From Orbicella franksi (taxonomy: Eukaryota): a stretch of 64,000 bases of DNA. The notes beneath the pieces are model-generated. The model was not told where the DNA came from. It did no database searches and was given only the letters and a program-made list of their open reading frames with translations. The translations under genes and the position numbers were made by a program. Below, in pieces: positions 1 to 31,800 of this stretch. Each line of letters opens with the position of its first letter. Position 1 is the first letter of the stretch. The DNA is taken from the NCBI GenBank assembly GCA_964199315.1, contig OZ116709.1, forward strand, positions 12,834,001-12,898,000, read 5' to 3'.

Positions 1-3000
1 GAACGCCATTCTCATCAGTATACTCTTCAACTTCCTCTTGTGGCTCGTCGTCGGATAGTGCAACAGGAAATTTAACTTCCGCTGGTTCGGTCCGTTGACC
101 TTCTCTTTTGATACTGGTTGTTGTAATGGTTCTCCTGACAATCCGCCTAACACGAACTCCGTTCTCATCAACATACTCCTCAACTTCTTCGGGTGATTCA
201 TCTTCCATTCCCTCGATTTCAGGAATAACTATTTCCCGATTCAAAGTTGCCGAAGGAACTCTCTCCATTACGTCATCGTGGTCAAGATCTTCCTTTAACT
301 CTGGTTTTGTTGACTGCGACGGCACAATTAAGAAAGAAATGTCTCCTGTAGGTTGTCTAGGTTCTTCTGATGCTGGTTCACTCTCCTCCATCCATTCAGG
401 AAGAACAACTTCACGTGTTTGCACTGAAGGAACAACATCATCAGAGTCAAAATAAACAGGAGCTGCTAACTCAAACATCTTTGCACCTGGACCGTCCTTT
501 GCTTCATCAACAGATGTACGGATTACACTTCTTGTTGTAATGGTTCGCCTCACAATTCTCCTCACACGAACGCCATTTTCGTCAATATATTCCTCGAAAT
601 CTTCTGGTGATTCATCTTCAGATGGTGTTAAAGGAAATTTAACTTCCACTGGTCCAACCTCGGCGCCTCCTCTTTTTTTTGTTGCCGTTGTAGCGATTCG
701 TTTAACAATTCTTCTCACCCGAACACCATTCTCATCAATATACTCCTCGACTTCCTCTGGACTTTCACCTTCTGATGATGCAACAGGAAATTTAACCTCC
801 ACTGGTTCAGTCCCTTCACTTTCTCTTTTAATACTGGTTGTCGTGATGGTTCTCCTGACAATCCGCCTCACCCGAGAACCGTTCTCATCAACAAATTCTT
901 CAACTTCTTCGGGTGATTCATCTTCCATTCCCTCGATTTCAGGCATAACTATTTCCCGATTCAAAGTTGTCGAGGTAACTCTCTCCATTTCGTCCTCGCG
1001 ATCAAGGTCTTCTTTTAACCCAGGTTCTTTAGGCTGAGAAGATAGAATTAAGAAAGAAATGTCATCTGTAGGCTGTCTCGGTTCTTCTGATCCTGGTTCA
1101 CTCTCCTCCATCCATTCAGGAAGGACAACTTCACGTGTTTGCACTGAGGGAACAACATCATCAGAGTCAAGGTAAACAGGAGCAGCTGACTCAAACATCT
1201 TTGCACCTGGTCCGTCCTTTGCTTCATCAACAGATGAACGGATTATACTTCTTGTTGTAATAGCTCGCCTCACAGTTCTCCTCACACGAACGCCATTTTC
1301 GTCAATATATTCCTCGAAATCTTCTGGTGATTCATCCTCAGATGGTGTTAAAGGAAATTTAACTTCCACTGGTCCAATCTCAGCGCCTTCTCTTTTTGTA
1401 GTTGCCGTTGTAACGATTCGTTTTACAATTCTTCTCACCCGAACACCATTCTCATCAATATACTCCTCGACTTCCTCTGGACTTTCACCGTCTGATAGTG
1501 CAACAGGAAATTTAACTTCTACTGGTTCAGTCCCTTGACCTTCTCTTTTGATACTGGTTGTGGTGATGGTTCTCCTGACAATCCGCCTCACCCGAGAACC
1601 GTTCTCATCAACATACTCTTCAACTTCTTCGGGTGATTCATCTTCCATTCCCTCGATTTCAGGCATAACTATTTCCCGATTCAAAGTTGTCGAGGTAACT
1701 CTCTCCATTACGTCCTCGGAATCAAGGTCTTCTTTTGACCCAGGTTCTTTAGGCTGAGAAGGCAGAATTAACAAAGAAATGTCTTCTGAAGGCTGTCTCG
1801 GTTCTTTTGATGCTGGTTCACTCTCCTCCATCCATTCAGGAAGGACAACTTCACGTGTTTGCACTGAAGGAACAACATCATCAGAGTCAAGATAAACAGG
1901 AGCTGCTGACTCAAACATCTTTGTACCTGGATCATCCTTCGCTTCATCAACAGATGTACGGATTATACCTCTTGTTGTAATGGTTCGCCTCACAATTCTC
2001 CTCACTCGAACGCCATTTTCGTCAATATATTCTTCGACTTCTTCTGGTGACTCGTCTTCGGATGGTGTAACAGGAAATTTGACTTCCACTGGTCCAATCC
2101 CCGGGCCTTCTCTTTTGATAGTTGCGGTTGTAATGGTTCGTTTTACAATTCTTCTCACCCGAACACCATTCTCATCAATATACTCCTCGACTTTCTCTGG
2201 ACTTTCACCGTCTGATGGTGCAACAGGAAATTTAACCTCCACTGGTTCAGTCCGTTGACCTTCTCTTTTGATACTGGTTGTGGTGATGGTTCTCCTGACA
2301 ATCCGCCTCACCCGAACGCCGTTCTCATCAACATACTCTTCAACTTCTTCGGGTGATTCATCTTCCATTCCCTCGATTTCAGGCATAACTATTTCCCGAT
2401 TCAAAGTTGTCGAGGTAACTCTCTCCATTACCTCCTCGGAGTCAAGGTCTTCTTTTGACCCAGGTTCTTTAGGCTGAGAAGGCAGAATCAAGAAAGAAAT
2501 GTCTTCTGAACGCTGTCCAGGTTCTTCTGATCCTGGTTCACTCTCCTCCATCCATTTAGGAAGGACAACTTCACGTGTTTGCACTGAAGGAACAACATCA
2601 TCAGAGTCAAGGTAAACAGGAGCTGCTGACTCAAACATCTTTGTACCTGGATCATCCTTCGCTTCATCAACAGATGTACGGATTATACTTCTTGTTGTAA
2701 TGGTTCGCCTCACAGTTCTTCTCACTCCAACACCATTTTCGTCAATATATTCTTCGACTTCTTCTGGTGACTCGTCTTCGGATGGTGTAACAGGAAATTT
2801 GACTTCCACTGGTCCAATCCCCGGGCCTTCTCTTTTGATAGTTGCGGTTGTAATGGTTCGTTTTACAATTCTTCTCACCCGAACACCATTCTCATCAATA
2901 TACTCCTCGACTTCCTCTGGACTTTCACCTTCTGATGATGCAACAGGAAATTTAACTTCTACTGGTTCAGTCCCTTGACCTTCTCTTTTGATACTGGTTG

Positions 3001-4240
3001 TGGTGATGGTTCTCCTGACAATCCGCCTCACCCGAGAACCGTTCTCATCAACATACTCTTCAACTTCTTCGGGTGATTCATCTTCCATTCCCTCGATTTC
3101 AGGCATAACTATTTCCCGATTCAAAGTTGTCGAGGTAACTCTCTCCATTACGTCCTCGGAATCAAGGTCTTCTTTTGACCCAGGTTCTTTAGGCTGAGAA
3201 GGCAGAATTAACAAAGAAATGTCTTCTGAAGGCTGTCTCGGTTCTTTTGATGCTGGTTCACTCTCCTCCATCCATTCAGGAAGAACAACTTCACGTGTTT
3301 GCACTGAAGGAACAACATCATCAGAGTCAAGATAAACAGGAGCTGCTGACTCAAACATCTTTGTACCTGGATCATCCTTCGCTTCATCAACAGATGTACG
3401 GATTACACTACTTGTTGTAATGGTTCGCCTCACAATTCTCCTCACACGAACACCATTTTCGTCAATATATTCTTCGACTTCTTCTGGTGACTCGTCTCCA
3501 GATGGTGTTACAGGAAATTTAACTTCCACTGGTCTAATCTCAGCGCCTTCTCTTTTGATAGTTGCCGTTGTAATGGTTCGTTTTACAATTCTTCTCACTC
3601 GAACACCATTCTCATCAATATACTCCTCGACTTCCTCTGGACTTTCACCTTCTGATGATGCAACAGGAAATTTAACCTCCACTGGTTCAGTCCCTTCACT
3701 TTCTCTTTTGATACTGGTTGTCGTGATGGTTCTCCTGACAATCCGCCTCACCCGAGCGCCGTTCTCATCAACATACTCTTCAACTTCTTCGGGTGATTCA
3801 TCTTCCATTCCCTCGATTTCAGGCATAACTATTTCCCTATTCAAAGTTGTCGAGGTAACTCTCTCCATTACGTCCTCGCGGTCAAGGTCTCCTTTTGACT
3901 GAGGTTCTCTTGGCTGGGACGGCAGAATTACGAAAGAAATGTCCTGTGTAGGTTGTCTCGGTTCTTCCGATGCTGGTTCACTCTCTTCCATCCATTCAGG
4001 AAGGACAACTTCACGTGTTTGCACTGAAGGAACAACATCATCAGAGTCAAGGTAAACAGGCGCCGCTGACTCAAACATCCTTGCACCTGGACCGTCGTTT
4101 GTTTCATCAACAGATGTACGAATTATACTTCTTGTTGTAATGGTTCGCCTCACAATTCTTCTCACACGAACACCATTTTCATCAACATATTCCTCGACGT
4201 CTTCTGGGGATTCGTGTTCTGATGGTGCCACAGGAAATTT
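1..4240. repeat. Coding tandem repeat, period 720 bp, about 5.9 copies in window; each unit is 153+153+414 bp
   Basis: Lines at 541, 1261, 1981, 2701, 3421 and 4141 align without indels; sub-repeat starts at 3421, 3574 and 3727. Confidence 0.97.
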
Positions 4241-6289
4241 CATCCTAGCCCTGGTAATCACCATTCTCTTCACCCGAACACCATTTTCATCAATATACTC
4301 TTCACTTTCTTCTGGTGACTCCTCTTCTGAGGGTACTACTGGAGACCTGATCTCCACCCGTTCAAGACCTTGATCTTCCCTTTTAATGGTTGTTGTTGTA
4401 ATGGTTCGCCTCACAATTCTCTTTATTCGAACACCATTTTCGTAAATATATTCTTCGACGTCTTCCGGCGATTCATCTTCTGATGGTACTACAGGAAATG
4501 TTACCTCGACGGGTTCAATTTGTCGAGCTTCTTTCTTAACAGTTTGATGTGGATCGTCCTTGACTTCATCAACCTCCATTGGTGCCTCGTTTTCAAAGGA
4601 CGAGCTTAGAACAGGGATTGTCACTTTTCTTTCAATGTTGATAAAAGACGCATCTTCTTTTATTTCAGGCCTTTCTTTAACCTGGGACACAGAGCTGGTA
4701 ATTCTTTTTGGATAATCTAAACCATCCGCTTTGAGAGGTTCTTCAGGTTTGTCAGGCACAACAACAAACCATTTGGGAACCCGTGGGTACCTTTTAACCT
4801 CGAGTACCACAATCTCTTCATTAAACTCGTCGGCTTCATCATCCTCTGATGTTTCATCATCTCCCTGTACATCGTCTATTTCCACTTGAGGGTCCGCATC
4901 ACGTTCCGTGGGGGGCGTAGGTGATGGTTCCTTGTGCGCCCGTTTTCGTGGTATCTCAGATATCTCGGACAGACCCTCTGGAGGTTCTATTCGTTTACGA
5001 TCGCGAATTTCTAGGCTTTCTTTGTCCTCTTCAAGATCCAGGAGGGATATTACAGGCCGGTGCCTTTCAACAACGGTTGCCGACAGTTCTTCGACGATGT
5101 CCGGTCTCTCAGGGATATGCACTGTCGGTAAAACGGGTTGACGTGGTTCTACCTGTATCGATGAGAGAGAAATCTCCTTTGGTGTTGAAGGTTTTTCTTT
5201 GACGGTTTCGAGCCACTCTGGGTAAGAAACATTTCTTTCTACTCTTGCAAGATTAAAATTTTCGTCTTGATCCATGGGTGGCTGATTATCCTCATGTATA
5301 GGCAATGATGCTGGTGACGGCAACTGAACAGTCACAGGTTGTACAGTTCTTTTCAACCGAGTCGTCAATGTGGTTTTGGTGAGCTTTTGTGTGCGACGAC
5401 CGTCGTCTGAGGTAAACGTGTGAATTCTTTCAGTTTCCTCGGGTCCTTCTCTAAGCTCGCGTTGACCATGATCTCCTGGTTTCAGGACAACTTTCACCGC
5501 CCCATCTCGCAACACCGTCTTGGGAGTAGTGGTAAAAGACGTCCGTACAACTCTTCTTACTCGCTGACCATTTTCGTCTGTGTACTCCTCTACGTCTTCT
5601 CCTGGCTCTGAAGGGACATCAACATCCATCTTCTGGGTGGGTAAACGACGCTCTGACCTGATTATTGTCTTGGTGGTCGTTACTTTAGAAATCCTCTTCA
5701 CCTGGCGACCTTCTTCATCAACGTATTCCTCGATAACTTCTTCGGGCTTCACTATCTTTCTTACTGAACGCTGCAAAGGAATACTCACCTCACTTGGTTC
5801 TTTCTCCAAGTAAACAGGTGCCGCTGATTCCTGCACGAGAGGTTGTCTACCACTGTCCTCCCCAGTCTCATCTTCATCTTCTTCGCTGTAATCTTCTTCA
5901 TCAGATGATCCTCCAAGAAGCGGTCTTCCCCACTCGAACACTGATTTACTTACTACAGCACCTTTCTCGCCTTGTTTAGTCTCTTGTTCGAGTTTGTGGG
6001 GGACTGGAATTTTAAAGCTTTCTATAGTGCCCTTTTTCACTGTGGTAACTCCAAAAGGAGACTTGTCCTCAATAGTTTTATCACCATCAGCGGTTCTTAA
6101 AGCAGACGTTCCTAATTCAAACGGTCTAGCAGATAGCTCTCCTTTGAATCTTGACCTTTCGTGAGTTTCTACGACTTGTGGCTCCGATTTAACTGATTTG
6201 GGAACCTCAAATCCTTCAATCTGACTCTTTTTTACTGTTGTGACCTTAAATGGTACGGTAGAATCGCCGTCTCCCTGAGGCTCATCTTC
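1..6289 (-). CDS. DST/MACF1: Giant exon, at least 2096 codons, acidic/Thr-rich with 240-aa tandem repeats, runs off the window
   Basis: Acceptor TTTCCTTGTATCTTTAG|GAA; no stop found in this frame on reading by eye; begins [21 protein letters not shown]. Confidence 0.9.
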
Positions 6290-9200
6290 CTAAAGATACA
6301 AGGAAATATCATGCATGTCATAAACGTACGAAAAGCTCCCAACAGCGCTCGTTAAGGTACGCACTTGACAGCTGATAGAGCGCCTCCTGCACTCCTGAGT
6401 TCTACATTCTTGCTTGGTTCTTCGGTTGGTGAGGGGACGAACTATTTAATCAGCTTTGTCTAGAGCTATTAATTAAATTAACATGTAGATGGGGTTTTTT
6501 AATAACAAGCAAAAGAGCAAATGCTGCGATAATTGTTGTTGAGAATACGTTCTCAACATTGAAGGTACTTGTCAATCAGTTGCCAAAATAAAATACGAAA
6601 TTCTTTGGAAACCCGTTAAGGTGGGCGGGGCCCAATTAAACATTCACAAGCAAGGCGATAAATCCTCCGAGAGCGAATAAATCATCTAGAATTATATTTT
6701 ACGAACATTTCCTAAGAAATGGTATGGGTTTAAATATAATGAAAATGTCAGAGCGCCACGCCAAGATCCTCGGAAGTTAGTAAAAACACTATCCTAGGTA
6801 ACAACATGTTTTACATCCTTTTCCAAGATTAAATTAATCTCTCAATGTAAATTTACGAGTCCGTGAGCACGTATTTTTCACAAGCAATACTGATGGGGCT
6901 GATATCGTCCTTGATTTCTAAGAGCCAAAGAACCACCAGAAGAAAAAACAACCTTCAATAAACAGCAAACAAAACCACCATCGATCGCTATTTGGGATTC
7001 CCGCGTTTCGAGCTAAAATTTCAAAACAAGTTTCCAAAAAACTAGTTGCCTTTAATGTTGAATTTTATACCTAAGATTTATGACTAAGAAATCAAAAGAA
7101 ATATTTGAAAGAAAGCAGTTTTTTCATATGATCAACTAGACATCACGAGGCTCGTCGAGTCATTTGATTTTGTCGTCGAACTGAGCGTGTATATCCACCA
7201 ATAAGAATCTGTTAAATGCCACTTCACATTGTGTGGAAGACCACGTCAATCAAATATTCAATTTGCGTTTGGTTTTTCAAATTTCCTTGAACTATATCGC
7301 TCGCGATATATAGCATCTTTGGTTCTGAACTAGGCGAAATTTCCAGCACAATGTGCAAGAATTCGTCTTGTTGAACTGATACACGAACTTTAAATTTTCG
7401 TCAGTGACAGAGTCGCATAAAAATCCGTTTTAGTCCGTTATGACCAAATTTGCATTTACACCAACAGAAAACAACTCATGCATTCAAAGTTATAATTCCA
7501 CTCGAAGGAGCCTTGCCACGTTGTTAGAATACATCTTCCCATTCTGCTTAAATCGAACAAATTAAAGCTTCAAAACGCTAAGCTAGCAAACAATTTGCAA
7601 GTAATAATAAATCAAACAGGATAGCCAAAGATTGGAAGAAGACTAACACGATATGAGACCAACGAATTTCAAAAAGTTAGGACAAATACGTTGCTCTTTC
7701 AGCGTCTTAATCAGAGAACAAGTTAAAGGTTCAACTTACATCTTTTCCTTGCTTCCTAAAGAAGCCAAAAACTCGAGCAACAGCGGAGGATATCGGATTC
7801 ATTTGGACGTTCTGTCCGCACGCCGTCGCCAAATAATCATTCACCCTTGAGACAGCAAGCGATTAGCATTGGAAGAGAGCCGCCAAATTCTCCCGAATTG
7901 TTCACGAAGAACTGTCGTATCGCGATATAGACTGTTCATTAACTGTCACCTATGACGAGACGAAAATGTCGCCAAAGCTTTCGAGATGGTCCAACACAAT
8001 AGGCAGAAATTCAGAGTCCCTTGAAATAACATTATAAAACAAATGAATTCAAGACCGAAAGCCGAGTTGCCAAGGTTAACACGTCACAGCAAAACCTGTC
8101 TGATATAGTCGTGCGGATGTGGCAAATTAACAAGTAAATTCTCGAAAATTTATCACTGTCTTGAGGTTATAATATTCTTTCCGCATTCAAAGCAACTACA
8201 AAAGAGAAATCACCCCACTCTAAAATCATAAAGCTGTATTCTTTGATTCAACGCCACCGAAAGAAAAAACAAAGACTATCCCTGGAGGCTATTTCAACGA
8301 CGATTTGTATAACAAAAAGAATGCCAGGCCTTCAATCAAAATGGGAAACCGTCCAACATGGGAAACCGGTCAGAGGGAAAGCAGACAACAGATCGAATTA
8401 GTGTTTAGGGCAACGCTTAGCTTAACTGTTAATTTTTACACATATTGTTAGTCGGAGTTAATTTACGGGGTTAAGGTTAGTTTTTGGTAAGGGTTAGAGT
8501 TAGCGTTACTATGCAATCTGTGTTTTACACTGAACGCATGCGTTACATAGCAATCCTTCAAGATTCGAATGTTCAAGATTCGCACCAAGAAGTCGGGAGC
8601 GTCACCCAAATGGCTACAAGCTGATGTTAGGTAGAATTTTACTAAACTGTACAAAAAAGTATTTACCTCATCCTGCAGTTCACCGTCACCAGGCTCCACA
8701 AACAGCGCGACTGTCACGTTATTTCTATGAGACACCACTTGGCATGCAGGCTACCTAACTGCTTCTCTCAAATGGTCACATAATGGAGCGTGAAGGTGTG
8801 CAGTGTGAAAAGTGAAGGCTGATGCGTGAAGCGTAAGCGTGACGCATGAAATGTGAATCGCGAAACACGAAGAGTGAGACTTATCACGTGAGGGCATGCG
8901 TACAATCTTTCCGGACTCACCTTGTCTCCAACGCGATTTCTGAGCTCCAGAAATCTGGTTTGTAGTTGGTCCCACTGGTTGTTGACTCCGTCCACCTTGT
9001 CTATAACAACACTTGGGTCTTGATCTGTATCCTGTAGATGGCGAACCACCTCCTGTCCAGTCTCATTCGTGTTCGCAAGCTGGTAATTAAGTCTGGTCAC
9101 CTCGAGATCTAAAGCCTTTGGAAAGACAAGGGAATGGTCAAGAGATATTGACCGAGTTTTGAGACTTAAAATGAAAACAATAAAAAGGGGTAAGGACTGT

Positions 9201-12200
9201 TGAGACTGGGAAAGATTGAGATGGGTTAAAAACGACAAACTTGAAAAAGTGTACTCTAATTTGTGATTAGAATTGAGCTATTTTACTTTACCCCGCTGAA
9301 TAATCTCGAAATGCATCAGTTACGGTAAAATCCCAACCATAGTTTCTCTCTTACCTTGACCCGCCTGCTCAGATTCTTGGGATCTTCCTCTTGTAAGAGA
9401 GATTCAATTTCTCCAGTCCGTCGTTTGATCTGGACCGTGAGAGACTGGACCGACTCGTCCAGATTCTTGACTGTACTCCATGTGCTCTCCAGTTCCTTTT
9501 GTCGCTCGTTTGACGCCACCACGATGAACTCCATCCGACCTCGAACGCTAGCAATCTCCTCCTATAGGCAAGGCCAGAAGCCATGTTAGTAACACAACAT
9601 ACCACCTACAAGTAGTTTAGACTTAACGAGCAATGCATTAAAGTGTGGTAACAATTTACAGTAAAACATTTACATACGATAGTTTGGGAATGATTTTAGA
9701 CTAATATTTAGGGCAACCTTAGTTTATTCAACAACTTGCTACACACAAGGGCACTGGCCAAGGTTAACAATGCTAGAGAAGGGAGTTAATACTAGCCTGG
9801 ATTTCGTCGCTTCCAGCAGCTCCTTCGCGACCTTCTAACAAATCATTTCCCGCCTTCAACAACAGCGCAACATCCCCCTTGTTCTGGGCAATTTCTTTCT
9901 GAAGAGTCTAAGAAAACAAGTCGACAGCAGTTCTGTTAGCATAGATTGTCATCAGGTTTTGATTTTCATAATCAGACCATAAAACCAAGCGAAAGCAACT
10001 ATGTCTTTAAATGTACCAAAGTTCTGTTAAGAAACGAAAACAAATTCAACTTAGTCTACGTGGTATCAAAAAGGTATCGTTACGCGTTATTCATGGAATA
10101 GGCAGGGCAAACGAAAATCTGGCATGTGAACTCTCAGTTATAAGTTCAGAATTCACTTTTCATATTATGATAGTCACGCAGCGTTACCTTCCCAAAAGTT
10201 GCATGATGGAAAAGTACTCCTTGCCTCTGTCGTCTGTCTGTCTGTCTAGCTGGCTGTGTCTGTCTGTCGGTCGGTCTGTCGGTGTGTCTGTCTGTCTGTC
10301 TGTCTGTCTGCCTGCCTGTCTGTTTGTTTGTCTCTTTTTCAGTTTACGTGGAAACATATTAACCGGATGGTCGAATAATGCAACGTTTAGACGTGTTTCA
10401 CACATCAGCCCCTGGATCTTACCTTGTGTTCAGATATTTGTCGCCTGATTGTATCCGTATCTCCCCCCACAGGTTCCAGCTTTCCCAGTCTTTTCTCCGT
10501 CCGTCCCAGGAAAATAGTTATATTCCTCACCAGTCTCCTGTATTTCTCCATCTGTAACACTGTCGTCTCTAACGTTACATTGCGCGTTTCCAAACGCTTC
10601 CACACTTCATCGTACCGCGTACGTACTGATGTTAAGTCCTCCTCGAGAGGGCACTGGGGCGTGTCACTGGGCTGCTGGGCTGTGATACTGATGATGACCT
10701 TTCCCAGTCCCACAAGGAGATCGATTTGAGCCTTGTACTGCACGGCTTCGTTCTGTAACGCCTGCAATATAGAGTCAAACACCCCATTACAACTGGGAAA
10801 TTCGTCCGGCTTCTTGAAACTGCAAGGAAGCTGTACATTCCCATTCAGAGATAGGATGTGTGGGTAACTAGCGCAAGCTGTAAATGATGAGTGCTTACCA
10901 CTAAACGGCACCCACTATCCAATCATAGCTCACACTGGGTTACCCACACAGTCCTGGTGTCAAATGGCGACGCTTACTCTCCAAGAAGAAAAAATTCAAA
11001 AATTCGAACAAATCATGGCAAATTTAATATTCGATTTAATTGACCTAAATTATGGAATGAACTCGATGAAAGATTCAAGTGTTGTACTTCTAATCAATTT
11101 AAAAAAGAACTAACTTCGCATTTCATTAGTCTCTGTTAATCTTTACTGATATTTTGATGGTATATATCTATTCATTTTGTTTTGTTTTGTATATTTACTC
11201 TTGTACCAAGTTTATAATATTTATGTGTACCAATGTATTTGTTGTGCCTCTTTCCTGACTCTCACATTTTTAATTATTATAATTACGGTCACCTAACTAG
11301 TTTAGCTTTTTAGTTATTTTGGGTGTCCCACTACTGTATGTACTTTACTGTTTATTTATTTATTTCTAATTATAATCTTGTAAATTCTTTTAGTTGTTTA
11401 CAGTAGTAGAAATAAACCGTTGTTGTGGACTCAGGAGCGGTGACTTACTTTAATACCCTTGTGAATATTTGGAGCATTGGTGATGGAATAAATTGGAATT
11501 GGAATATAGAAGAATAGATGGAATAAGTTGAATATCCAGCTAGGCCCAATGATATAAGAAGTGAGTATCTGGCATTTAAGGCGTACTGTCCTTTGCTTTA
11601 CGTATCATTCGGTAGCTGCATTCTAAAAATAGCTCGAGATTATCCCTGTCTGACCCAACCCTTTATCAAATTTTAAATTCAATTTTTTCAATTTCCTGCA
11701 ACATTTTCCCAATAATTTACCCCCTTCCCCAATGCCGTCATAACCTTCGTATTACCTTCTGTTCTTTCATCTGTGAGCTGAGCACATCAGGGTCGAGACC
11801 CACAGGGGGTATGGAGACAAGCCTCACTTCAATGTTGTCCAACCAGACAGTGACGTTTTTGTAGACTGAGTAAAACTTCTCTGATTGCTCCTGTAATTCA
11901 TCAAACTTAGCCGTGGTGTTTAGCAGTTTAATGGCCAAAGCCTGCCAGTTCTTGTTGACGCGATCTAACGTTTCCAGAATGATGGACTGCTGTTTGTTCT
12001 TCTCCAGATTGATCAGCTCGTGACCTCCTTGATTCACAGATTGGAAAGCTGGCCGCATCTTCTCCACTTCATCTTGGAAATGCTAATAAACAAAAAAACA
12101 GTAAAGCATTACTTGCAAGCGTTTGTAGGAGTTATTGAAATATAGCATTACGTGACATTCTTTTAACAAGCGTTGACAAATCAGTCAAAACCGATCCCCG

Positions 12201-15200
12201 ATAAAGATAAAGATCAATGTCGTATCTTTTAAAAACCGTCAGTGTACTTTTGAAAGACCAAAAAAATCCTCCCACAGGAATGCAGTAAGGTCACCCATTT
12301 CCCCGTGTCCACGTGACTTTGGTCACGTGGACACGAGGCAAACATTATTTGGAAAGGCAAGTTTGTGGCGTGGAAAACGTGCCGAGTCCTTCCACGCGTC
12401 ACGAACGATGTAACGTTTTGCAAATTCCACTTTCTCTTCCAAATGTCAGCACAATTTCAAGGATACATGTTACAAGAGAAAAGACACCAGTCAACCAAGG
12501 AACATTAAATAAATAATGCATCTTTTAATCTCAGAGCTAGCGATGAATGAAATGCATGGCTGTTAATAAAGAGAATTCACAGTTTGAACATTAAAGAAAT
12601 AAAACCGAATGCCACTCACCTGTAGCTTCTCTTCGAACACGAGTATATCACTAGTCACCAGTTCACCAGAATCAAGTCTCTTGATCATTCCCAGTTCCCA
12701 GCGTTCGAAATCTTTTGCGATCATAATGAACACACTCTTCAATTCTTCCTTTCGCTTGTCGGATCTTTCCATCACTTCAGCCCATAGTTTGTTGAGTTGT
12801 TTCAGTTTGGATTCTTTGTGTTTCTTCTTCTGTGAGTGGAACATCTCGTTTAGAGCTTCCACTGACGTGCCATGGCGATTCACTTCCACTTGAAGAATCT
12901 GAAAACAAAAGAATCCAATTATCTTTAGCCTACGACTAACGGGTACTCCTTCTTTCGCTTAATAAATAAACCGCGAGGAAAAAATGGCCGCGTGAAATCC
13001 TGGGGGAAAAAAAGGCGCATCTCGCCCCCAGGATTTTCCCCACCATTTTTTTCCTCTCTCGGATTTTTTTTTATAGCTCGTCATCCAGTTATGCAAAACA
13101 GTTTCCGATCAAGCAGAGCGTGCGTAGCGTTTGTCACATTACCTTGAATTGTTGCGCCTGGTTTCTAAGTTCAATGAGATTGCGTGACACGGGTGGCAGT
13201 TTATCCAGTTGTTTCTTGAGTTCAGTCAGCGCCTTGATAGCGACTTCTAATCCATCCTTGAAGTTCTGTGAGTTAGTGAGTGCGGACTGCAGCTTGGCCT
13301 GGTACACAGAGATGTTCGCACACAGCTCATCGTATCGCTGATTAATCGACTTTTTTCGCTCAAACTCGGGGACGCGAATTAACCCTTCCACGCTGTGACC
13401 GAGCACGCTGACAGCTACGATCTCCGCCTGATGTGAATTCACGTCTGTTTGCAGCGTCTAACAAGAGAACAAACACAAATTAGATTTATAACAAGAGTAA
13501 AACCTTTTTCAATTCTGGTAATATTTTGATCTGTTCAACTTAAGTAAAGGCTTCTAATTCTGTTTCATTTCCGTTGTCTTCTTCTTTAAGTGAAAGCATT
13601 GCTCAAATGTTAAGATACTGCTGTTGTAATCAGGAGGTCTCGACCAAGCCCTAAAGTTCAACTTCTGAGCCACACCTTATTACCGTCACAATCCTCTATT
13701 TCATTACCTTTTTTTTTTATAAACTACAGTAACTCGTACCCAAACTATTTCTTTTTTTTAATATTCAACCGTGTCTCTTTATTTCTACTTATTCCGCGTG
13801 AAAGAAAATCGAGGACCTCTGCACAAAGGCTACCTTATTTCTGGTTACCTGAAGATCGCTGATTTGCTGTTTAATAGCGGTTGGATCAGGTTTCAGAGGC
13901 TGTGCCATGTATCTTGCTAGTGTGTCCTCTACACTGTTCAACCAAGGTAGCACCTGTGAAGCTTGACTGTCGTACTCACGTAACTGACGCCACGAGCGGT
14001 CCAAGATAGTTCCTTGTTCACTGAGTAGCAACAGAAGCCTGCAAGGAAATAGATAACGCTCTTGAATACAAGAAAACTGTCGAATGATGCTAGTAAGAAA
14101 TTAGTAACTAAGCAATGCATGATAGGAGATGTAACACCAGAGGGATACGTGACCTAGGAATGCGTGGAATGCGATACAGGCCGTGGGATAAAACAAGAGT
14201 AGGATGCGTGACCACACGTTAGAAAACAAAAAGTGGAAAATACAGTTCATAGCAGATGTAGCACAAATGGAATGTGTGACAAAGAATTAACAAAAGGGGA
14301 ATGCGTGACAGATGTTAGCCAAGTCATTTCGCATTTCAGCACATTCGATAGGCCTGCAGAATTAAAGCAACATTAAAATGTTAAAAACAAGAATATTTGT
14401 AACATTATTTACCTGTTGTAACGTTCATTGATATCTGCAAGCTTGTTCTCTAGTACCCAGGACTTTTCATTCGGGTCTGATATAACTTGAGTCGGCGACT
14501 TGACATCTGCGGATTCTAACGTGGCTACAGATCGTTCGAGTTCTGCGTGGAAGACCTTCAAGCAAAATAAAGTTCCAATCAATTAGGTTCTCTTTACCCT
14601 CATAACATGCACAGAAGGTACTGGAAGGCCGAATTTGTATGTTATTTGGGTAATTTACTGATTAAGATTTCAATTCTCGTTCTCACAGTACGAGTTAAAC
14701 TTAATCAGATACTTTTTTGACATTACCCGTCCCCCTCCCCGTTCCCAGCGTAGTTTGGTCCAAGATGGCGGCGGCTTCACAACCGAGCCTAACGAAGGAA
14801 CGAATTTTTGGCGCAAGAAATAGGGAACTGTACACAGTCCGACAAGACATCGAAACAGCCATAAACTCCCGTATACAGCAGTAAGCTGTTCAGCAAATAT
14901 TTTTGTTTAGTTTGACAGTCCTTCTAATTCTAAGGTTATAACCTAAGAATATCATTTTAAGCTTCAGAATAAATACAATCACAAAACGCATAAATTGAAA
15001 TGTTTGCGTTTCCAAGTTAATTTGACGCAGAGCTGATCAGCTGCTATGATATGCATGGGTCTACAATCAAAGATTGGACTTGGAAGCGGTATTTTAAAAG
15101 TAAATTTAAAAAAAAACAGTCACCTTGGCTTCGTGTAGAAAGTCTTCTCCACTCTGGTTCACTTCCTTCAAGTCTCGTTCGTGGTCTTTTACGTCGTCAA

Positions 15201-16826
15201 CAAAGTGCTACAACGAAAGACAGAGAAAACAATTACAACCTTACTTGTTTTGCGAGAGTAAAATTTGTTTTCGCCGAGGGCAGACGAATGGAAACCATCA
15301 AAGAAACTGAGGATTTTAAAGAGCTCGGATAAAAGGATTGTACGAATTCAAATCCCTTCTCGTGCGACTCATCTTAATAACGCTTACTTCGGTAAATATT
15401 TACTTTATAAAAATGTCAAATGCAACAAAAGGTGATCAGGCAACAGAATAGTAGAACGTGATTCAGAAAAAATCACTTCAAATTGTGCTAGTCACTTTCG
15501 AATTACGAAGAATACAAACTTGAAGACTACAGAGTTTCTTTCCGAGGTAGATATAGATATAAGGTACGAATATCGTATAATAAGTAGTAATGTGCCATAA
15601 AAAGTGGCGGTCAACTTAAGTTAGCATTTTTGGCATACTTTCAAAGCGTCTTGACTTAATCTCCCAATCCGCATACAAATCTGACGGTTCCGACCAACAG
15701 AAAGTGCCATTCTTTTCCGAAGATCAGACTTTTCCAAACAAAGTTTGTCTGACCTCTGTAGGATTACTGAGCACTAAACTGAACAATTCTCTCACACTGC
15801 TTTATCCCACATGCCACACACTGTGCTGGTTATTCTTCCAGTTAAAATAATTCCGGCTCAATTCAACTTTTTCCGCAATCAGAGTACACTAACCTTGTGA
15901 ATGAGCAGTTTGTCCTGCGCTCTCTGCAGATCTTTGGCGTCAAGTAGAATGGCGGTTCCTTGATCTTCTGCTTTCTTAAGCCAAGCCTAAAAATCAAACC
16001 AAGTACTCTCATTAGGAATGGACCATCGTTAGTAAAGGCAAAGTCTATTACGATGCGTGTGATCGAACACATATTAGCCACGCGCGTCATCGGCGTTAGC
16101 CTCTTCCAAGCGTTTGTTACTTGGGGAGCACCGCGAAAAACGGCTGTTGAAAACAATTTTTTTTGGGGGGGGGGGGGATATCAAGCACCGCACTCCGCAA
16201 TCCTGACTTTTTACCTCGGCGTTTATCGCGCTATGCTCCAACTAACCAAACGCCCGATATCTGCAGCATCAAAAGACTTCCAGTATCGTGACCATGAACA
16301 GAACACAGTGACCCTGGCTAGTGCTCGAACCCAGACCGCCCTTGCCGGTTAACGGAGCTATGAGAATATTGCGGTATGCAAACTTTTTTCAAAATAAAAA
16401 AAATGGTAAAAACCTCACAAAGACCATTAAACGGACAGTAATAAATCTAATCCAAATAAGGATTTTTAAAACTTGGGAAAACTGAGACAGATCATAGTTG
16501 GTACTCGCGGTATTCCCAATTAATCTAAATTTTCAATCCAATGTTAACTACACTTGTTTCATTGTGGTTTATCACTGCCTCTTTAGCGTTCATCTATCGC
16601 ACATTTACTGTGTCGATTAATTTAGGGTTTAACAGTTCGCTATTTTCCCATCCTATACTATCCTACTATTCCTTCTAAAAATAGATTGATCCCAAGAGTC
16701 CGCTTCTGAAAGGCGCAAGTGTATTTCTACAAACACAGAATAGATAATGAATTGACTTATGGAGAGTCAGTGTACTTGAAAGGGAACTTCACCCCTTTTT
16801 TGTTCGAATATATTTTATAACATTGC

Positions 16827-16864
<38 letters not shown>

Positions 16865-19800
16865 TAGAAACCTGAGGCTGAGTTTTTGAAAAGAACATAA
16901 TTTTGTGCGTTGAAAGTTAGTAAGTACAATAGAATTGTATGTGTTTCACTAAACCGAATAAAATTCTTCCTTTCTCCAAACGGCAAACCAGCCAAAAAAG
17001 CCCGCGCCGGAAAAACAATATTCTTTAATAAAACAAGAGTGTAAGACACACGGTGTAAAACGATCTCGAAAAACACAGGCCGATTTTCGTCTGTTGTTTC
17101 GGCGGAGACATAATTGAATTATAACTTCTGACAGTCGTTGAGCCAGATCAGCCGGCCGTTTAACGACAAGTCAAAAGACAGAATTGTGTATTAATAGTCA
17201 AAGCATTTCGAGACACTTCTTTACTGTCGTCCCTCGAAACATAACTAACAAAAAGACAATGTGTGGAGCCGTGACCTCACTGAAAGTTCAGTTTGTTCTT
17301 CACAACAATAAATTTCCAACTTTTTCCAAAAGACAAAAATATACAAAAATGTACTACAAAAATAACCAAGAACGTCTGATAAATTGATATTGTGGTGAAA
17401 GTTTAAGGACAGATTTCTTGGTTTCAAGTGGACAAAACTCCTCGCCCTATTTTAGTACCGAAAATGGCAATTTCTACGCTTTTACCCTTGTATTCGTGAG
17501 ACTGTGGGCATGGCCATTTTTTTTTTCGTTCTACTTCAGTTTAACCGTTCGAAATGCAAAGCTTGTTGTGAAAATGACTCAGTTCAGTTACTTCTTTTTT
17601 TCGAAGCGAACGGATAAATAGGCAACTTAGCTTCGATTGCCGCTAATCTTCCGCGTCCGGTCTCCGTTCCACAGACGATCAATCGATCTATAATTGATTG
17701 ATTGTGCTAGCCGAAACTTTTTGGGAAAGAACGTTTCTCCTTTTCTCGAAACATTTCGTTAATTATACATACCAGGAATGGATGCAGCAGTTCCTCAAAC
17801 TTCGTCAACTTCTCGTGAATCCTAACGAGTCTCATGTAGCGATTGTCAAGCTCGGCTTGTAGTCGTCCCCATCTCGCTTCCAAGATGCTCATCTTCGAGT
17901 CGAGTTCGGCTTTTTTCGTGGGCGACAAAAGCTGACCGCTGCCTTTCAAGAACTGCTTGCTCTGTAAGAGCATAACTTCAACTGGTTTCTTCCGCTCATA
18001 GACAGCCTTAGTGAATCTCTAGTTAAAACAAAACAACAAAAACAATTAGTCAAACTGGAAGGGTATCGGTTTACAGTCGTCAAAGGCTTTATTTCCGACC
18101 ACGCCGCCCGAAAGTTCTCAAACTGAAACACGATCTCCTAAAGGTGACTGACGATTTAGCAGCTCATGAAGAAGATAACCATAATAGAGTAACAATATTA
18201 ACCCTTGAGATTTACTTTATATTGCTTACAAGCAATTCATGGGGTAACTAATCAGTGTGCATAGGCAATAAAGACAAGAGATGAAGACGTTAGCACAGAT
18301 TTCAAGAATACACATGACTACACTGGGCTAATAAGTATTCTATAGAAACCCTTTCAATATATCAAAAACCAAATCAATACGGCAATATGTCATTAGCTTC
18401 TTTACGTTTTCAATAACATGCATTGCGATATAATAAACTTGTGTTGATGTATCGGGGAAGAGGCAGTTAGCGTGTAAATGCTGCTATTAAGGGATAAAAA
18501 TAGGTTACTTTGCTGAAATAATTTCAGGGACTGATCGAATCAGGCAAAGTCATTCATAATTTCAACAACGACCTGTTATCACTTGAGAGAAATGGAAGCA
18601 ACACTCAAGAAATTTCAAACGGCTCCTGTCGAATCCATAATGTAAACAAACGTTTGCTAAACGCATTCTTACTTAATTAAGCCAATTTGTTCGCTCATGA
18701 CAAGTCAAGTTGCAATCGTAAAAGAAACAAAAGCGACACTTGTGATGGAGTGAATGAAAATGATCTTCATTTCACTGTAGCTTCAGTGCTCTGAATTTTC
18801 TAAATGGTCGTTAAAACAGTGTGGCGCTAAAAACAAACCAAACTGTGAAAGCGAACATAACTGTACCGTGAGTCGACCCTTTGCATATACTGTACAGTGC
18901 AAATTAAAAAACGTTGCGGAGCAACGCCAGACCCATTAATAGTACGCTCTAAAGCGACACTTGTGTTAACGAACCTGGGCTCCATGTTACAAAGCATCGC
19001 AAAAACTAACAGCCAAGGCGTCCCTGTCTCCAACGGAATCTTAAACTCCATCAGCTCCGATAATAAAAGAGTCTTAACTTGACCTTATTGTCGCCGGCGA
19101 CAAAGGCGATCAACGCTTCATGTCGAACGCTTATTTGCATTTGATCTACAGCTCTCTTTCTGGGCTCCGTAGTGCTAACTTGAGTTCACACACGCTATTT
19201 GTTTGTTTTACGTGATTATTAAAATCACCAGGAAAAAATGAACGCTGATTAAATGTAGATTAAACAAAAACTCTTGGCTTTTTCAGCATACTAGTCTCAA
19301 GGGAACCGAACGCAACGGATAAAAATACAAAAAGTTTGCAAAACTAAGACGTCGACCAAAGCCGATTGAATTGAGAGAGAAAGTTACGCATACACTACCT
19401 CCAGTTGAAAAAAAAACTTAAAAACTTGTTGAAAGTTGAATCAACTAAACAAACAGCCATCTTGTTTTTTAATATCCGTGATAATTAAATTTAGCAATTC
19501 CCGCCCTGACGGATAAAGCCACAATATGTTATCATTCAATTAAAAGCTAAGGAACTGAACTTTCATGTGGTGCTGTTTATTATGCTGTATATGCAAGTCG
19601 GTTCTAACAGCTTTTGTTGAGTCTGTGCCTGAAACCCTAGAGTGTACAATACAGGTGAAGAATTTCGAGAAATACTTTCACGTGGTGCTGTTTATTATAA
19701 AGTACAAAGTGGTTTTATCGTTAATTGTTCCTGGTGGATAAAACCCAAGTGTGTGACCATTGAAATAGAAGCTCTTGAGATGAGATTTCAACCAGTGTAG

Positions 19801-25800: not shown

Positions 25801-28800
25801 AACACAATGTGGATGTTGGTTCATCCAAAGTAGACCCACTATTCCAACATTGCTTGGCGGGGACGGGGGCTCAGAAAATTGAATAGTGACTTCATACCTT
25901 CAAATAATGCATCACCAGTTGGTATTTTGTCAAATGTGCCAAGGAAATTTGGCCAAGATTGTAGATCTAAGACTAATGACTTGCGTTCCACATTTATTAA
26001 ATAAACCCACTGTACCTTATCAAGGGTTTGCACACTTTGCATTCCATTTGTTATGGTTTCTACAGGTTGTTCACTTAGTGAGACCGTAGCTGCCGTCACT
26101 GGGTCTTGTTCAACTAGTCTTTCTGTGATACCAACTATTTCTTGATCATCAGGCATTTGGATATCTTTCAAAAGCTGGTCAACATCTTTTGAGCCTGCCA
26201 AAAGTGACAGCTTACCCTGAAGAAAAAAATGAAAAGATCAGTTATAACTGGTTTTACATTGCATAAATATTCTCTATGATGTCAATGATACCTTAATTTT
26301 GTTGGCACTGTATGTAAGTCTGTTCCCATCTGGAGGATTGGGGGGGAAATATACCACTATTGTGATTGCTAGATCTTAACTCATGTTTTCCATAGCATGA
26401 ACAGTTTAAGAGCATTGCTATCCCCTGCATAGGATGCTAGTCCAACACAAGTCACCCTCCTTCAGCCTCAAGAATATCAGCCCAAAGAATATCTGAAATC
26501 TGTTTCCCTGAAAATTTGGTCACCAAGTCCACCGAATAAAAAGCATGGCCTGAACCATTTTTCTTTCTGGGAAAAGGTCCCACCCCACCCCTTATTCTTT
26601 ATTCACTCAATCTGACTCTGACAAACATGTGAAAAGTGTTGACATACCTTCTCTGGAGAGGTGGATTTGATCACTTTCACATTTGTAAAGACCTGTTCCT
26701 TGCTGAGAGCTTGCTTCAGGTTCCAGTGTCTTGTTCTCCACAGTGTTAATAAATGTTTATACTGAATTTCCAACCTATTGGACCAAACACAAGGAAAAAT
26801 TACTGGTACAGCATGGTAAACCAAACTTATAACAGACATTCTCTCACTTAGAGCGGTCCACTCCAGTTCTTCTCTGATTTTGAACTAGAAAATAACTAAA
26901 TGATAAATAAGGAGTTGGGAGTGTTAACAAATTGATACCGTATTTTCCCGTGTATAAGTCGACCTTTCAAGACTTAAAAATCAGTCCAAAAATTCGCCCT
27001 CGACTTATACATGAGTCAAAACTTGAGATCCAAGCGCCAGTCAAATAATTAGCATAATAATTGTCTTTCAATGTTAACAAACATGTGATAAGCGGCAGCA
27101 CAGTTTACAACGTACGTTCGCTTAGCGATCTGTCTCTCCATATCAGAGCTTCAAGTTAAAATGCATCAACATTTATTCGTTAAATTTTAACCTGGATCTT
27201 GTAGACACTCACTGGCTCAATTTTGTCATAAAGAACCAATATTTTTCCTTTAAATAAAGCTGTGGTAAAGCCGCTCGGAGAAAATATCTTTCGCGCTTGG
27301 AACTTCTCTGCTTGGTAACCTGGCAGGATACGAGTGCGAGGACTTCTGTACCAGTACTTGACCGATTTCAAGGCTTGACTACCAAGTTCCCAACACACGC
27401 TTTGCACTTTGTTTATGGCATCGTTCTGAAAGTCGTGAGCTTCTTTGGTGTTTTGCCTGTCTTATAAAGCCACTTTTAATCTCTTCGCACTTAAAAAGGC
27501 TTGTTTGAAATCCTTACGTTTGATTTTTGTGAGCATTTTACAAAAATTATCATCGAAAAGTCTGCATGCACATGTGTTGCTAAACTGGGTATAACGCTCG
27601 TATACGTGCCATAATAAGCTTTAAAACTGCGCATTGAAACATGCTGTGATTTGTTTACATATCTGTGGTAGCTGAAAGATAATTTTAAGAAATACAAGAT
27701 AAGTTTTCCAAGAAATCCTTACCTGGAAATTAAGAAAATCTAGTTTTTGACCTCAAAAATTGGGGGTCGACTTATACACGGGATCGACTAATACACGGGT
27801 AAATACGGTAGATGTGTACACATTTTGGGGGTTTTATTTACAAAGTGTTTTCTAATGAGCACTGAAAACCATCATGGCCATTTCACTGCTTAGTGACACT
27901 TGTCTAGTGATTGATAACTCTTCCAAACTGGAGAGAAACAACCTTTGCATCATTTCAACTGCTTTAGTAAGCAAGGATAGATAGTAGTGCTTATGGTAGA
28001 TATATGAAGAAAATCAATTTTGGAGTCAGAGATCGAGTGGACCATTCTTAGTGAGAGCCTCTTAACAATTCATGAATTAGAAAAGAAATACAGGCATTAA
28101 AAAAAAGCACATAACAGATTAGTTAACATTGATTCATCCTAATTTGCAATTAAACTCATCAACAATAGACGAGCTTGGGCAAAGTGCCTGGAAAGATAGT
28201 GGAGCCTCACGCACAAGAGCTGGGCACGTAGGGTAACCATGACAACCCTGTAAAGCAACCACCAGGCACCGTCACACTGCAAAAAAGAGTGGAACCATGA
28301 TACCTACCTCATACTTACCAGAAAGGGAGGAAAGGCAGGGAGCAAAGTCGCCAAGCACAGTCGAAAAGGCAAGAATGCACGTGAGAATGAGCTGACCTCA
28401 AAAGCCGAGCTGTAAAACCACATGACCACCTGCAAACCTCAACTACTGCGCATGTCCACAACAGGGGAAGCCACTGACCAGCATTGTTTCGCGTTTAACT
28501 TAGCTCAAATTGCAGTTAACCGCATTAAAATGTTTCAAGTTTTTCAGCCAAAGTAAGTCATCTCATCAAAATTTCTCTCAACATCTACACATTTGATTTG
28601 TTACTGTCAGTTACAACTAAGTGAACACAAGAAGATCTTACAAAGACCCTGTAGAACCTAATACAGGAAGTTGAATCATTCAGGTCCAACACAGATTTAC
28701 AGTAAGTAACATAAGTTATATCATTTTACCTTGTTGAAAATTCAGTAGCCTCTACGTCAGGAGCAGGAATAACAAAACATACTGACGGCACTTCACACTG

Positions 28801-31800
28801 TCTACCACTGGCATTTGTGATCTGGTAAGAGATTCAGGTTTCAGGGAAACACGGGTTTGATTAGTGATTTCGATCAGGGTTTTTTGGTTTGTTTGTTTGT
28901 TCATTTATTCTGTTTATTTTATTTTCTACTGAGGTCTGTAATAATATACACTTAAGAAAGAAAGAAACGAATCACTTCCTGATTACATGCAAGACATACT
29001 TTCCAAGAGTGATGTTCAGAGTTATCCAGCAGAATACACTCTTCACCTTTGTTGACAATATTCTGAAAAAAAAAATTAATTAAAAACATATTTAACATAA
29101 ACAACCGGAAAAATGAATTTCAATGTGTGTGCAGGTCTTTCACACATAATGCACCAACTGTGCTACAATCAGGCATATACCTTGACCACAAGCAAAGTAT
29201 TTTTCCTAACCTATCTTCCCACCCATGCAAAATTTTGGCCAAGATCTCACTGAGAATCTCGGTGAGTTCTTGGCTTCTGAGATTTTGGTATCTTGGTGAG
29301 ATCTTGACAAGATTGTGCTGAGATTTAGAGAGACTCAAAAATCATAGGAATATCCCAGCCATCTTGGTGATTATATCTTGCCATTCTCGACAAGAAATAG
29401 GAAATCTCGCCAGGATCTTGCCAATATATGAATATACAAACATCATGGCAAGATCTCTGCAAAGTCTCGGCAGTCTTGGCAAGATTTCGCCAATCTCAGC
29501 GAGATAATCGAGATCTCAGCGAGATCTAGGCAAAAATTTTGCACAGACACCGGAACAACGAGTGTATATCAGACTCACCTGCATGTTCTTGTAACTGCAC
29601 ACTGGGTCAACAAGAAGTTTGCTCTTTAGTTTGGATTTCCTCTGCGGCAACGGTACCACCTTTTTACTCAGGAGTTGTAAAGAACTTATGACATCTTTGA
29701 AGTCAACTAGTTCTTGTTTCATTTCCTGGTTAAATAAAATTCATGTCAATGACTTAATTTTCAAGTGTGGCCAACACCTAACTTCTCCTCACACCATCAA
29801 TGCGATGCCAGTCAGGTGACCATCACAGCCATCAATCAGGAATATAGCATCTTGACATATTACTGAATTCTCAGAGAGGAGAATTACTTTTCACAACTTG
29901 GCCAAATTGAAAGGGTTAAAATAAAAGAATCAAATTTAGTCACTTTTAAAAGTGTAGACAAACTGCAGATTGTCAGTAGTCTGTAATTTACAACTTTAGG
30001 GAGAACAAAACCTACAGATTTTGCACAGCATTAAAAAGAGAAAATATCAGGAAGAGGTTTAATGTTCAGCTTCCTTTCTCAAACCAATTAATAATTCATC
30101 ACGTTTAAACAAAGGAAAAATATCAAATACAGTTTAAAGGGAATAAAAGTGCTACTTAGCATTTCAAAAAATAATGTTAATTTTGTGATAAACTCAGAAC
30201 ATATGGCAGTGACCTGAATTATTCATGTAAGCCACACCTATTAACCTTGCCTGACCATTTGTTTACTAAGTATTGAAAATGAATTCTCGCTGAGTTCTGT
30301 GTGACCTAAAATATCCAGTTTAGATAGATACACTGAAACACTAAGCATAAAAGCAAGCCATAGGATAAGAAACACAAAACTGGCAAGAGCAAGGCATAAA
30401 TGAATGCTGCATAAACATAGAGCCTCCACTAGGGAAACCAACTAGAGAGACAATCTCAGATAGTGCAGAGTGCATTGCATAGTTCTGGCACAGTAGTCAC
30501 ACATGTCGTGTTCACTCCCGGTTTGTATTTACTTTGGTACCTAGGGCTTTTTCCCTTGCAGAATATGATCGGACAGAAACCTTGATAAGACATAACCTTG
30601 TCACAATCTTGGCAGTGCGTATGTTTCATGTCTGCACTTTCATTCGATATTTAATAATAGCTTACAGTTACTGTTTGTCAAGACAGTGTGGTGGCCTCAT
30701 GGTTAGTGTGCTTGTCCCTAGATCAAGTGGTCCAGGTTCAAGCCCTGCCGAGGACACTGTGTTGTATTCTTGGGCAAGACACTTAACTCTCACAGTGCCT
30801 CTCTCCACCAAGGAGTGTAAATGGGTACTGGTGAATTGTTGAGGAAACCTAACAAATTGCAAGGGAGTGACTTGCGATGGACTACCATCCCTTCCAGGGG
30901 GAGTAGAAATATTTCTAGCTGCTTCATGCTACAGAAACCGGGATAAGCTCCAGAAGCTACATGTATGAGCCAAGCGGCTCCAAGGCTTCACTTCAAGACA
31001 GCTTCCACATTTTATGCTGGTGTTTTACGCTGATTTTTGTTCATTTCAAAATTCAATAATACGTTGAAGAAGCAAATGTGACAATTTTAATTTTCACACC
31101 AACATTTGTAACTTGATACTTCTGTTTTCCTCGCAAAGGTATGTAACTTAAAATCCTTGTTTTCTCAAAAACTTAAGAGATGAACGGAAGAAAGTAAATA
31201 TCCTATGACAAAATGGAACAAAGTTTAACATCTTATGAAAACTTTTCACCGATAATCAAGAAGTAATTTAATTATCAAATACTCATAGAATACCACATTC
31301 TTATACAGTTGCCACCTCAGTGATATTGATTAATGCAATGGAGAAGCATTCACGAAGAAGTATTGAATGTCTGCACTACTCAGTTGACCGAAATTATATA
31401 TCCTACATCGGGAAACGAGTCCCGCCAAAAACTGAGTAAATTAATTTACGCTTTCATTACATGCCACAGAGTCTGCAGCAATATTTGAACACTTGGTCTC
31501 TTTCATAGGGACAATTGAAAGAAAAATAAATAAGCCACTAGGGAGAAGCAAAACGTTTCCATCCTTAATTTGAACTCTGGCAAAGTTTGATAATAGCAGA
31601 TGATATTTGATGAACCGAACTAGGGGTAATTCTAAAAGATACTCAGTCACAGTAGCGTTTTTTGCGCTAAAACGGGAGAAGTGACATTACACGAAAAATA
31701 ACTGCTGTCCTCGGTCATATCACAATCATAACAAATAAAGAACCACATGACTCTGGGGATGAAAATGGAGTATATCACGCTAACAATGCTAGAATGCATG

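Follow-up and report, generated by a model that had tools for sequence, protein, structure and literature searches.

A giant exon of a coral spectraplakin gene encodes a repetitive, predicted disordered insert with a recurrent charged motif

We analysed a stretch of 64,000 nucleotides (nt) from the coral Orbicella franksi (NCBI GenBank assembly GCA_964199315.1, contig OZ116709.1, positions 12,834,001 to 12,898,000 of the forward strand), here called the window, whose own coordinates are used throughout. Its minus strand carries the N-terminal half of a gene that we identify as a spectraplakin by colinearity with a protein of the sea anemone Nematostella. Within this gene, a single giant exon is spliced in frame to exons of the spectrin rod and encodes a chain built largely from a 240-residue repeat. 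The exon had been singled out in an original prediction made from the letters of the window alone, and the claims of that prediction are taken up below where the results bear on them.

The giant exon, its repeats and its splicing

On the minus strand, an open reading frame (ORF) scan found the frame from 6289 to 2 free of stop codons over 2096 codons and running off the window start, in keeping with the open frame of at least 2096 codons that had been predicted; every other frame in this region is open for at most 76 codons. Upstream of 6289, a pyrimidine tract is followed by an AG at 6291–6290, forming an acceptor. The complete exon probably has some 2,300–2,500 codons, because a close relative (P0035) has an ORF of 2439 amino acids (aa). 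Its 3′ end, together with the C-terminal EF-hand/GAR part of the gene, falls outside the window. The parts of the exon are as follows.

2–6289, minus strand: window part of the giant exon; 2096 open codons, reaching past the window start.
4520–6289, minus strand: non-repeated first part of the exon (residues 1–590), holding two motif copies, both diverged, and short blocks that are conserved between species.
4112–4519, minus strand: degenerate first block (residues 591–726), with three motif copies and without spacer.
2–4111, minus strand: array of 5.7 in-register units of 720 nt (240 aa), starting at residue 727 and holding 17 motif copies.
3551–3652, minus strand: representative 34-aa motif, with acidic strand, DENG turn and basic strand; predicted β-hairpin.

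Counted with the pattern E[EDK][YF][IVT][DY][ED][NE]G followed by xRVRRIV, the window part of the exon holds 22 copies of a motif of the EEY[IV]DENGxRVRRIV type. Each unit of the array combines a spacer, bearing conserved blocks, with three motif copies at 51-aa spacing, and every full unit is exactly 240 residues long. The exon therefore has repeat periods of 51 and 240 aa, the inner period of 153 nt (51 aa) being found by Tandem Repeats Finder in every unit. The encoded chain contains 23% D+E, 14% K+R and 8% P, has no cysteine and carries a net charge of −201; its combined fraction of P, E, V and K is 41%.

The motif count upholds the three copies plus spacer per unit that the original prediction had described. 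Its further description, about 5.9 near-identical units without indels, is correct as to the indels, gives a count slightly above our 5.7 and overstates the near-identity: aligned gap-free at 720-nt offsets, the units have 0 indels and are 87–96% identical in DNA. Between pairs of units, synonymous divergence (dS) is 0.06–0.38, nonsynonymous divergence (dN) 0.03–0.09 and dN/dS 0.22–0.48. These values indicate that the units diverged under purifying selection, and the array appears to have expanded through tandem duplication of the 720-nt unit. The pattern of divergence also counts against an assembly artefact, which we reject: the units differ by 4–13% in a codon-aware pattern, and RNA contigs reach into the array.

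Transcript coverage, proposed earlier as a check on the exon, is present in RNA-Seq runs of several studies, in which 68–85% of the sequence words sampled from the unique part were found and 42–68% of those from the array. We placed contigs of four RNA runs on 4450–10449, and these cover 4450–6291 of the giant exon. A 2674-nt contig from a polyA library (run X3) joins 6289 to 8921 across an intron with GT..AG ends and continues through three further joints, so that one contig of uniform depth spans the giant exon and four upstream exons. The 6289/8921 junction recurs in run X8, both in a 57-nt fragment and as a loose end. After splicing, a single frame stays open, with ELRNRVGDK leading directly into EDEPQGD, which bears out the predicted phase-0 acceptor, and the four upstream exons joined in the polyA contig are spectrin-repeat exons, as had been expected of an exon said to follow several spectrin repeats.

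6290–8920, minus strand: intron 5′ of the giant exon, GT..AG, 2631 nt; joint in run X3 and junction fragments in run X8.
8921–9115, minus strand: spectrin-repeat exon joined directly to the giant exon, ending in ELRNRVGDK; RNA joint, weak Pfam Spectrin match.
9355–9561, minus strand: upstream spectrin-repeat exon, seen in RNA; on its donor side the GC-AG intron 9562–9796.
9797–9907, minus strand: upstream spectrin-repeat exon, with RNA joints.
10423–10770, minus strand: upstream spectrin-repeat exon; low end from RNA, high end approximate and set by homology.

Introns 6290–8920, 9116–9354 and 9908–10422 have canonical ends, and the joint of the GC..AG intron 9562–9796 (minus strand) was seen in all four RNA runs. 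Contig depth, a crude measure, is similar in order of magnitude for the giant exon and the upstream exons (155 and 103 in X8, 32 and 66 in X2, 17 and 17 in X3, respectively). One RNA run covers intron 6290–8920 thinly (12.9, the exons having 103–155), which points to unspliced RNA or to carried-over DNA. An internal first exon within this intron was considered and dropped, as none of the joints in the four RNA runs originates there.

The host gene and the spread of the module

The gene was identified through the Nematostella protein model P0102, which has 3031 aa and in which Pfam recognises two calponin-homology (CH) domains, an SH3_10 domain at residues 1035–1099 and nine Spectrin stretches. 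From residue 33, at 53654, to about residue 2452, at 8909, P0102 is colinear with the window, with 37–86% identity per exon, and then passes into the giant exon: its C-terminal end consists of four motif copies, found by the repeat region of a second Nematostella model, P0012, at E = 4e-21. Since P0102 maps colinearly onto the window, the window gene is, on this sequence evidence, the orthologue of the N-terminal half of the Nematostella spectraplakin. The hallmarks of a spectraplakin, namely a CH pair, a plakin domain with SH3_10 and a long spectrin rod, were each found, and among the ORFs scanned with Pfam none showed ankyrin repeats, ZU5 or a death domain. The anthozoan plakin-domain cytolinker of the original prediction is thereby substantiated.

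28729–29740, minus strand: exons of the plakin-domain SH3 (SH3_10); Pfam SH3_10 on 29519–29740, colinear with Nematostella residues 1008–1111.
41399–41698, minus strand: exon of the plakin region in which a single, diverged motif-like stretch stands isolated; exon 40% identical to Nematostella residues 476–570.
47666–53768, minus strand: exons of two calponin-homology domains (actin-binding domain); Pfam CH on 51018–51155 and 48090–48227, colinear with Nematostella residues 33–273.

The ORF exon at 29519–29740 matches the start of SH3_10, and window positions 29734–28729 correspond to the Nematostella segment that contains the full domain at 1035–1099. The giant exon begins near residue 2450. 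By our estimate, the end of the plakin domain falls around residue 1500, about four repeats beyond the SH3, which leaves some 900 residues, or about eight spectrin repeats, ahead of the giant exon; the claim that it does not directly follow the plakin domain thus holds. Pfam Spectrin matches on single exons at 9–13 kb are weak, and searches of the PDB with three flanking spectrin exons yielded weak matches to dystrophin or chance matches only, with no placement within the plakin domain. The acidic arm of the motif-like stretch at 41399–41698 is weaker in its Nematostella counterpart. Within another ORF, 33371–34237 (minus strand), the stretch 33479–33934 is 55% identical to Nematostella residues 885–1029 in colinear order, and this part, at least, has the appearance of a regular internal exon coding for plakin-domain sequence.

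A phmmer search with one 240-aa unit against 1.84 billion representative proteins (E ≤ 0.001) returned 34 clusters only. Two of these are named, Montipora foliosa XP_068678676.1 ('uncharacterized protein, partial') and Nematostella A7SF37 ('predicted protein'); the others are ORFs from ENA, Logan and JGI assemblies. A7SF37 is the model P0012, and P0102 lies just upstream of it at the same locus and on the same strand. The Nematostella unit has three EEFVDEEGRxVRRIV motifs and a spacer with ESAEPV and LPDWL blocks. The Nematostella repeat ORFs follow the orthologous exons on the same strand, and spectrin-like sequence restarts after the repeat region. In close relatives, too, a spectrin repeat begins at the end of the ORF (YLVIIETLYQYV...QFNFVLENFLQW...), which then reads through into an intron.

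On Nematostella DS469641.1 (1–27590), a single spectraplakin gene is annotated publicly as two 'predicted proteins', with the cut at the repeat region. The repeat, too, is in pieces (ORFs 7909–9057, 10449–16412 and 16357–18627), and these breaks suggest frameshifts or small introns in an old assembly. A published survey labels the Nematostella spectraplakin 'truncated' (PMC9145010), and the split gene models probably lie behind this label. The same work describes a complete, GAS2-containing spectraplakin in the coral Stylophora (PMC9145010), separately from the identification of the window gene.

Comparison of repeat number between species had been proposed from the outset. Motif number per unit and total length both differ: behind the spacer stand one, two or three motifs, depending on the species, and repeat ORFs range from about 650 to more than 3000 aa. 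A more distant lineage shares the arrangement. In assembly ERZ26696836, upstream spectrin exons are 30–38% identical to those of Nematostella and are followed by large motif-bearing ORFs; a related copy of this sequence occurs in GCA_949826985.1. Another contig of the distant lineage holds a 100-aa unit (PVEEFTDDQGRVVRVIIVRTIVTRTV...) with the motif, followed by spectrin-like ORFs. By these comparisons, motif, spacer blocks and insertion site are common to the coral, sea anemones and the more distant lineage. As the module stands at the matching position of the gene in that lineage, the insertion is old, and the module has been retained since before stony corals and sea anemones split. The earlier label 'lineage-specific' therefore fits in that the sequences are few and the only named ones are cnidarian; a recent coral invention, as the label might imply, does not fit a module of this age and spread.

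Two further observations concern related sequences. ERZ26696836 and GCA_949826985.1 hold a second conserved piece, EVVYVIDGKPVEPETITVDGKPVE, beside spectrin-like ORFs. Other assemblies contain a stand-alone ORF of about 470–525 aa (P0025, L004:10001–11485; cluster P0031) with two motif copies, a PEWM-like block and an EEIVV.EV+R+P block, which resembles a small paralogue of the exon's beginning; the N-terminal cysteine cluster of P0031, MKACIRWCCPCCL, resembles a palmitoylation site.

A candidate docking array and its alternatives

The original prediction had seen no recognised repeat family and no plakin repeat in the exon, and our searches agree. Over the 2096 exon residues, no Plectin repeat matched in Pfam at E up to 1, and no credible Pfam family was found on the giant exon. 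Some families accumulated weak matches in sum, among them PTCB-BRCT (29.9 bits, 0 stretches) and DUF3337, with no single stretch passing; we rejected these as artefacts of the acidic repeat. PDB sequence searches with one unit and with a motif profile gave nothing credible. The top of an ESM Atlas feature search consisted of synemin clusters at 0.71–0.73, under the level of a meaningful match, and provides a lead only.

For one 240-aa unit with 27 aligned sequences, AlphaFold2 reached a predicted local distance difference test (pLDDT) score of 45. The model forms strand-turn-strand at each motif, and its sole better-scored stretch is the spacer block around VVLPEWM (60–73). The isolated 34-aa motif, modelled with 59 diverged copies, scored higher, with pLDDT 71–77.5 over five models. 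In the best of these (77.5), strands 7–12 (EVEEYI) and 18–23 (RVRRIV) flank DENG. The prediction is thus of a mostly disordered unit and, for the isolated motif, of a β-hairpin, and since an acidic strand lies opposite a basic one, the hairpin would be charge-complementary. We speculate that the threonine-rich tail past the basic strand could be phosphorylated by basophilic kinases. In the alignment of the 59 diverged copies (A1), the glycine is invariant and the aspartate almost so, and the spacer blocks are kept across species.

It is this position-specific conservation, in the motif and in three spacer blocks, that leads us to favour a multivalent docking array. We assign a probability of roughly 60% to the reading that the exon is a transcribed giant internal exon of the coral spectraplakin orthologue and encodes a disordered, multi-motif insert acting as a multivalent docking or extensible segment. 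Joined in frame to the spectrin rod at about residue 2450, it would add an acidic, cysteine-free and mostly disordered chain in which a charge-complementary motif of about 20 residues (acidic strand, D-E-N-G turn, basic strand) recurs at least 22 times, alternating with a spacer that bears three more short conserved blocks. The rigid rod would thereby give way to a long, flexible stretch that offers many short, identical docking sites, a multivalent platform that could recruit or cluster one or a few partners along its length. The segment may also lengthen under load as the hairpins open.

Several points weigh against this reading. We infer the function of the exon from its sequence, and the hairpin is confident for the isolated motif only, AlphaFold being unconfident in the context of the full unit. 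Several RNA contigs terminate precisely at the 8920/8921 exon edge, and the X8 junction fragment has a depth of 56.6, below both flanks (103 and 155); exon skipping, or further transcripts carrying the giant exon, are possible. The copy number of the array is that of one assembly.

The main rival, which we think unlikely, is that the chain serves as an entropic spring, an elastic, length-setting spacer like titin PEVK in which composition and length matter and the motifs are incidental. The chain is predicted to be disordered, is strongly charged and rich in P, E, V and K/R, varies several-fold in length between species and is placed inside a load-bearing rod, all of which such a spring would share. 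However, its P+E+V+K content of 41% is well under the approximately 70% of PEVK. The invariant glycine, the acidic/basic register and the spacer blocks are moreover kept, although the flanking exons are only 30–74% identical between species, and dN/dS between units is 0.22–0.48. Constraints of this kind, tied to the sequence itself, are more in keeping with binding sites than with a spacer that acts by entropy alone.

More doubtful still is the possibility that the hairpin motif shares ancestry with, and would represent the ancestral form of, the obscurin/titin-binding (OTBD) module of ankyrins, its basic strand docking an obscurin-, titin-, plectin- or filamin-like partner. In small ankyrin 1, electropositive residues within R64–K73 and K100–R108 mediate the binding of obscurin (PMC11927728). 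Our small ankyrin 1 query has 156 aa, against a published 155, and agrees with the numbering of PMC11927728 at K38, H39, H41, R64, V66, F71, K73, K100 and R108. The motif profile aligns with residues 88–107 of this sequence at 11.5 bits, a score that 0 of 5000 composition-matched shuffles reach (shuffle maximum 6.7), and the aligned stretch overlaps K100–R108, one of the two basic sequences that obscurin binding requires (PMC11927728). With this query, the comparison points to a real, motif-level resemblance at a functional basic stretch, a point absent from the original prediction. The OTBD also consists of duplicated modules (PMC2942773) and binds plectin and filamin C, according to a reference cited in PMC11774597. 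Yet 11.5 bits is no better than the best chance matches of the profile among 177,635 PDB sequences (11.0 and 10.4), and the whole-sequence score of 5.3 bits is reached by 15 of 5000 shuffles. Neither the search of 1.84 billion proteins nor a word-index search returned an ankyrin, and the query, one residue longer than the published form, was matched to it by residue numbering only. The OTBD is described as a vertebrate acquisition (PMC2942773). The coral module sits in a spectraplakin gene and not in the C-terminal regulatory domain of an ankyrin. A 20-residue acidic/basic hairpin could, finally, readily arise twice. Common ancestry is thus unproven, and convergence appears at least as likely.

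It is very improbable that the exon is mainly part of an independent transcript, started upstream of 6289, and that the form spliced into the spectraplakin is minor: the X8 exon contig is deeper than both the upstream exons and the junction fragment, the Montipora and Nematostella annotations model the region as a protein of its own and a stand-alone protein of about 500 aa made of the same pieces exists elsewhere, but the sole joints in the four RNA runs go to upstream spectrin exons and none comes from intron 6290–8920, the X3 contig spans the junction at uniform depth, the frame is continuous across it, the exon edge has neither a stop nor a start context of its own, and the upstream Nematostella model P0102 itself enters the motif region.

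Comparison with known giant exons and docking modules

Spectraplakins are the main actin–microtubule linkers of animals, and optional giant exons set their further binding. The multivalent docking array that we favour for the coral exon has its nearest architectural counterparts in the giant optional exons of bilaterian spectraplakins (Drosophila Shot, vertebrate MACF1b and dystonin/BPAG1b): in both cases one huge exon adds a repetitive module to a CH–plakin–spectrin cytolinker, at a site behind the N-terminal plakin domain and ahead of the rod's C-terminal part. In the bilaterian proteins this exon directly follows the plakin domain and encodes folded, intermediate-filament-binding repeats of the plectin type. 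In contrast, the coral exon has no Pfam plectin repeat, encodes a predicted disordered chain and lies about 900 residues deeper in the rod. Plectin repeats are reported to have originated in Bilateria (PMC9145010). Cnidarians place a different module in their spectraplakin, a large array of charged motifs, predicted to form hairpins, in a chain predicted to be disordered.

The ankyrin OTBD, as found in small ankyrin 1 (sAnk1), resembles the coral motif in that both are short, duplicated modules in which a basic, β-prone run comes after an acidic one, and both lie in a largely disordered region of a cytoskeletal linker; the basic residues of sAnk1 mediate electrostatic binding of obscurin (PMC11927728). 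The two differ in host, a spectraplakin rod rather than an ankyrin tail, and in number, at least 22 copies against 2–3. The similarity is too short for ancestry to be established, and the OTBD is described as vertebrate-specific (PMC2942773). Should common ancestry nevertheless hold, which we consider improbable, a docking motif held to be vertebrate-specific would predate bilaterians and would have stood within a spectraplakin. In cnidarian spectraplakins, dozens of its copies would tie the actin–microtubule linker to a giant partner of the Ig/Fn or filamin/plectin type, an undescribed route to a cytoskeletal scaffold in animals without plakin repeats.

Public annotations cut the gene at the giant exon, in Nematostella into two 'predicted proteins' and in Montipora as an 'uncharacterized protein, partial'. 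Nematostella is genetically tractable, and the function of the module is therefore open to direct test.

Titin PEVK, like the coral exon, is a long, charged, proline-containing, disordered repeat segment inside a filament protein that bears load, with a length that differs from form to form. PEVK is about 70% P, E, V and K and is built of 28-residue PPAK and poly-E modules, whereas the coral chain reaches 41%, has no 28-residue PPAK module and conserves a hairpin motif and spacer blocks by position. The giant exons of ankyrins (480-kDa ankyrin-G, 440-kDa ankyrin-B and Drosophila Ank2-XL), which are neuron-specific alternatives, differ from the coral exon in gene family and sequence; like it, each adds, in one exon, thousands of mostly disordered and partly repetitive residues to a membrane-skeleton adaptor. 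The cnidarian spectraplakin module is undescribed and unannotated, and is conceptually grouped with the giant repeat exons of other cytolinkers.

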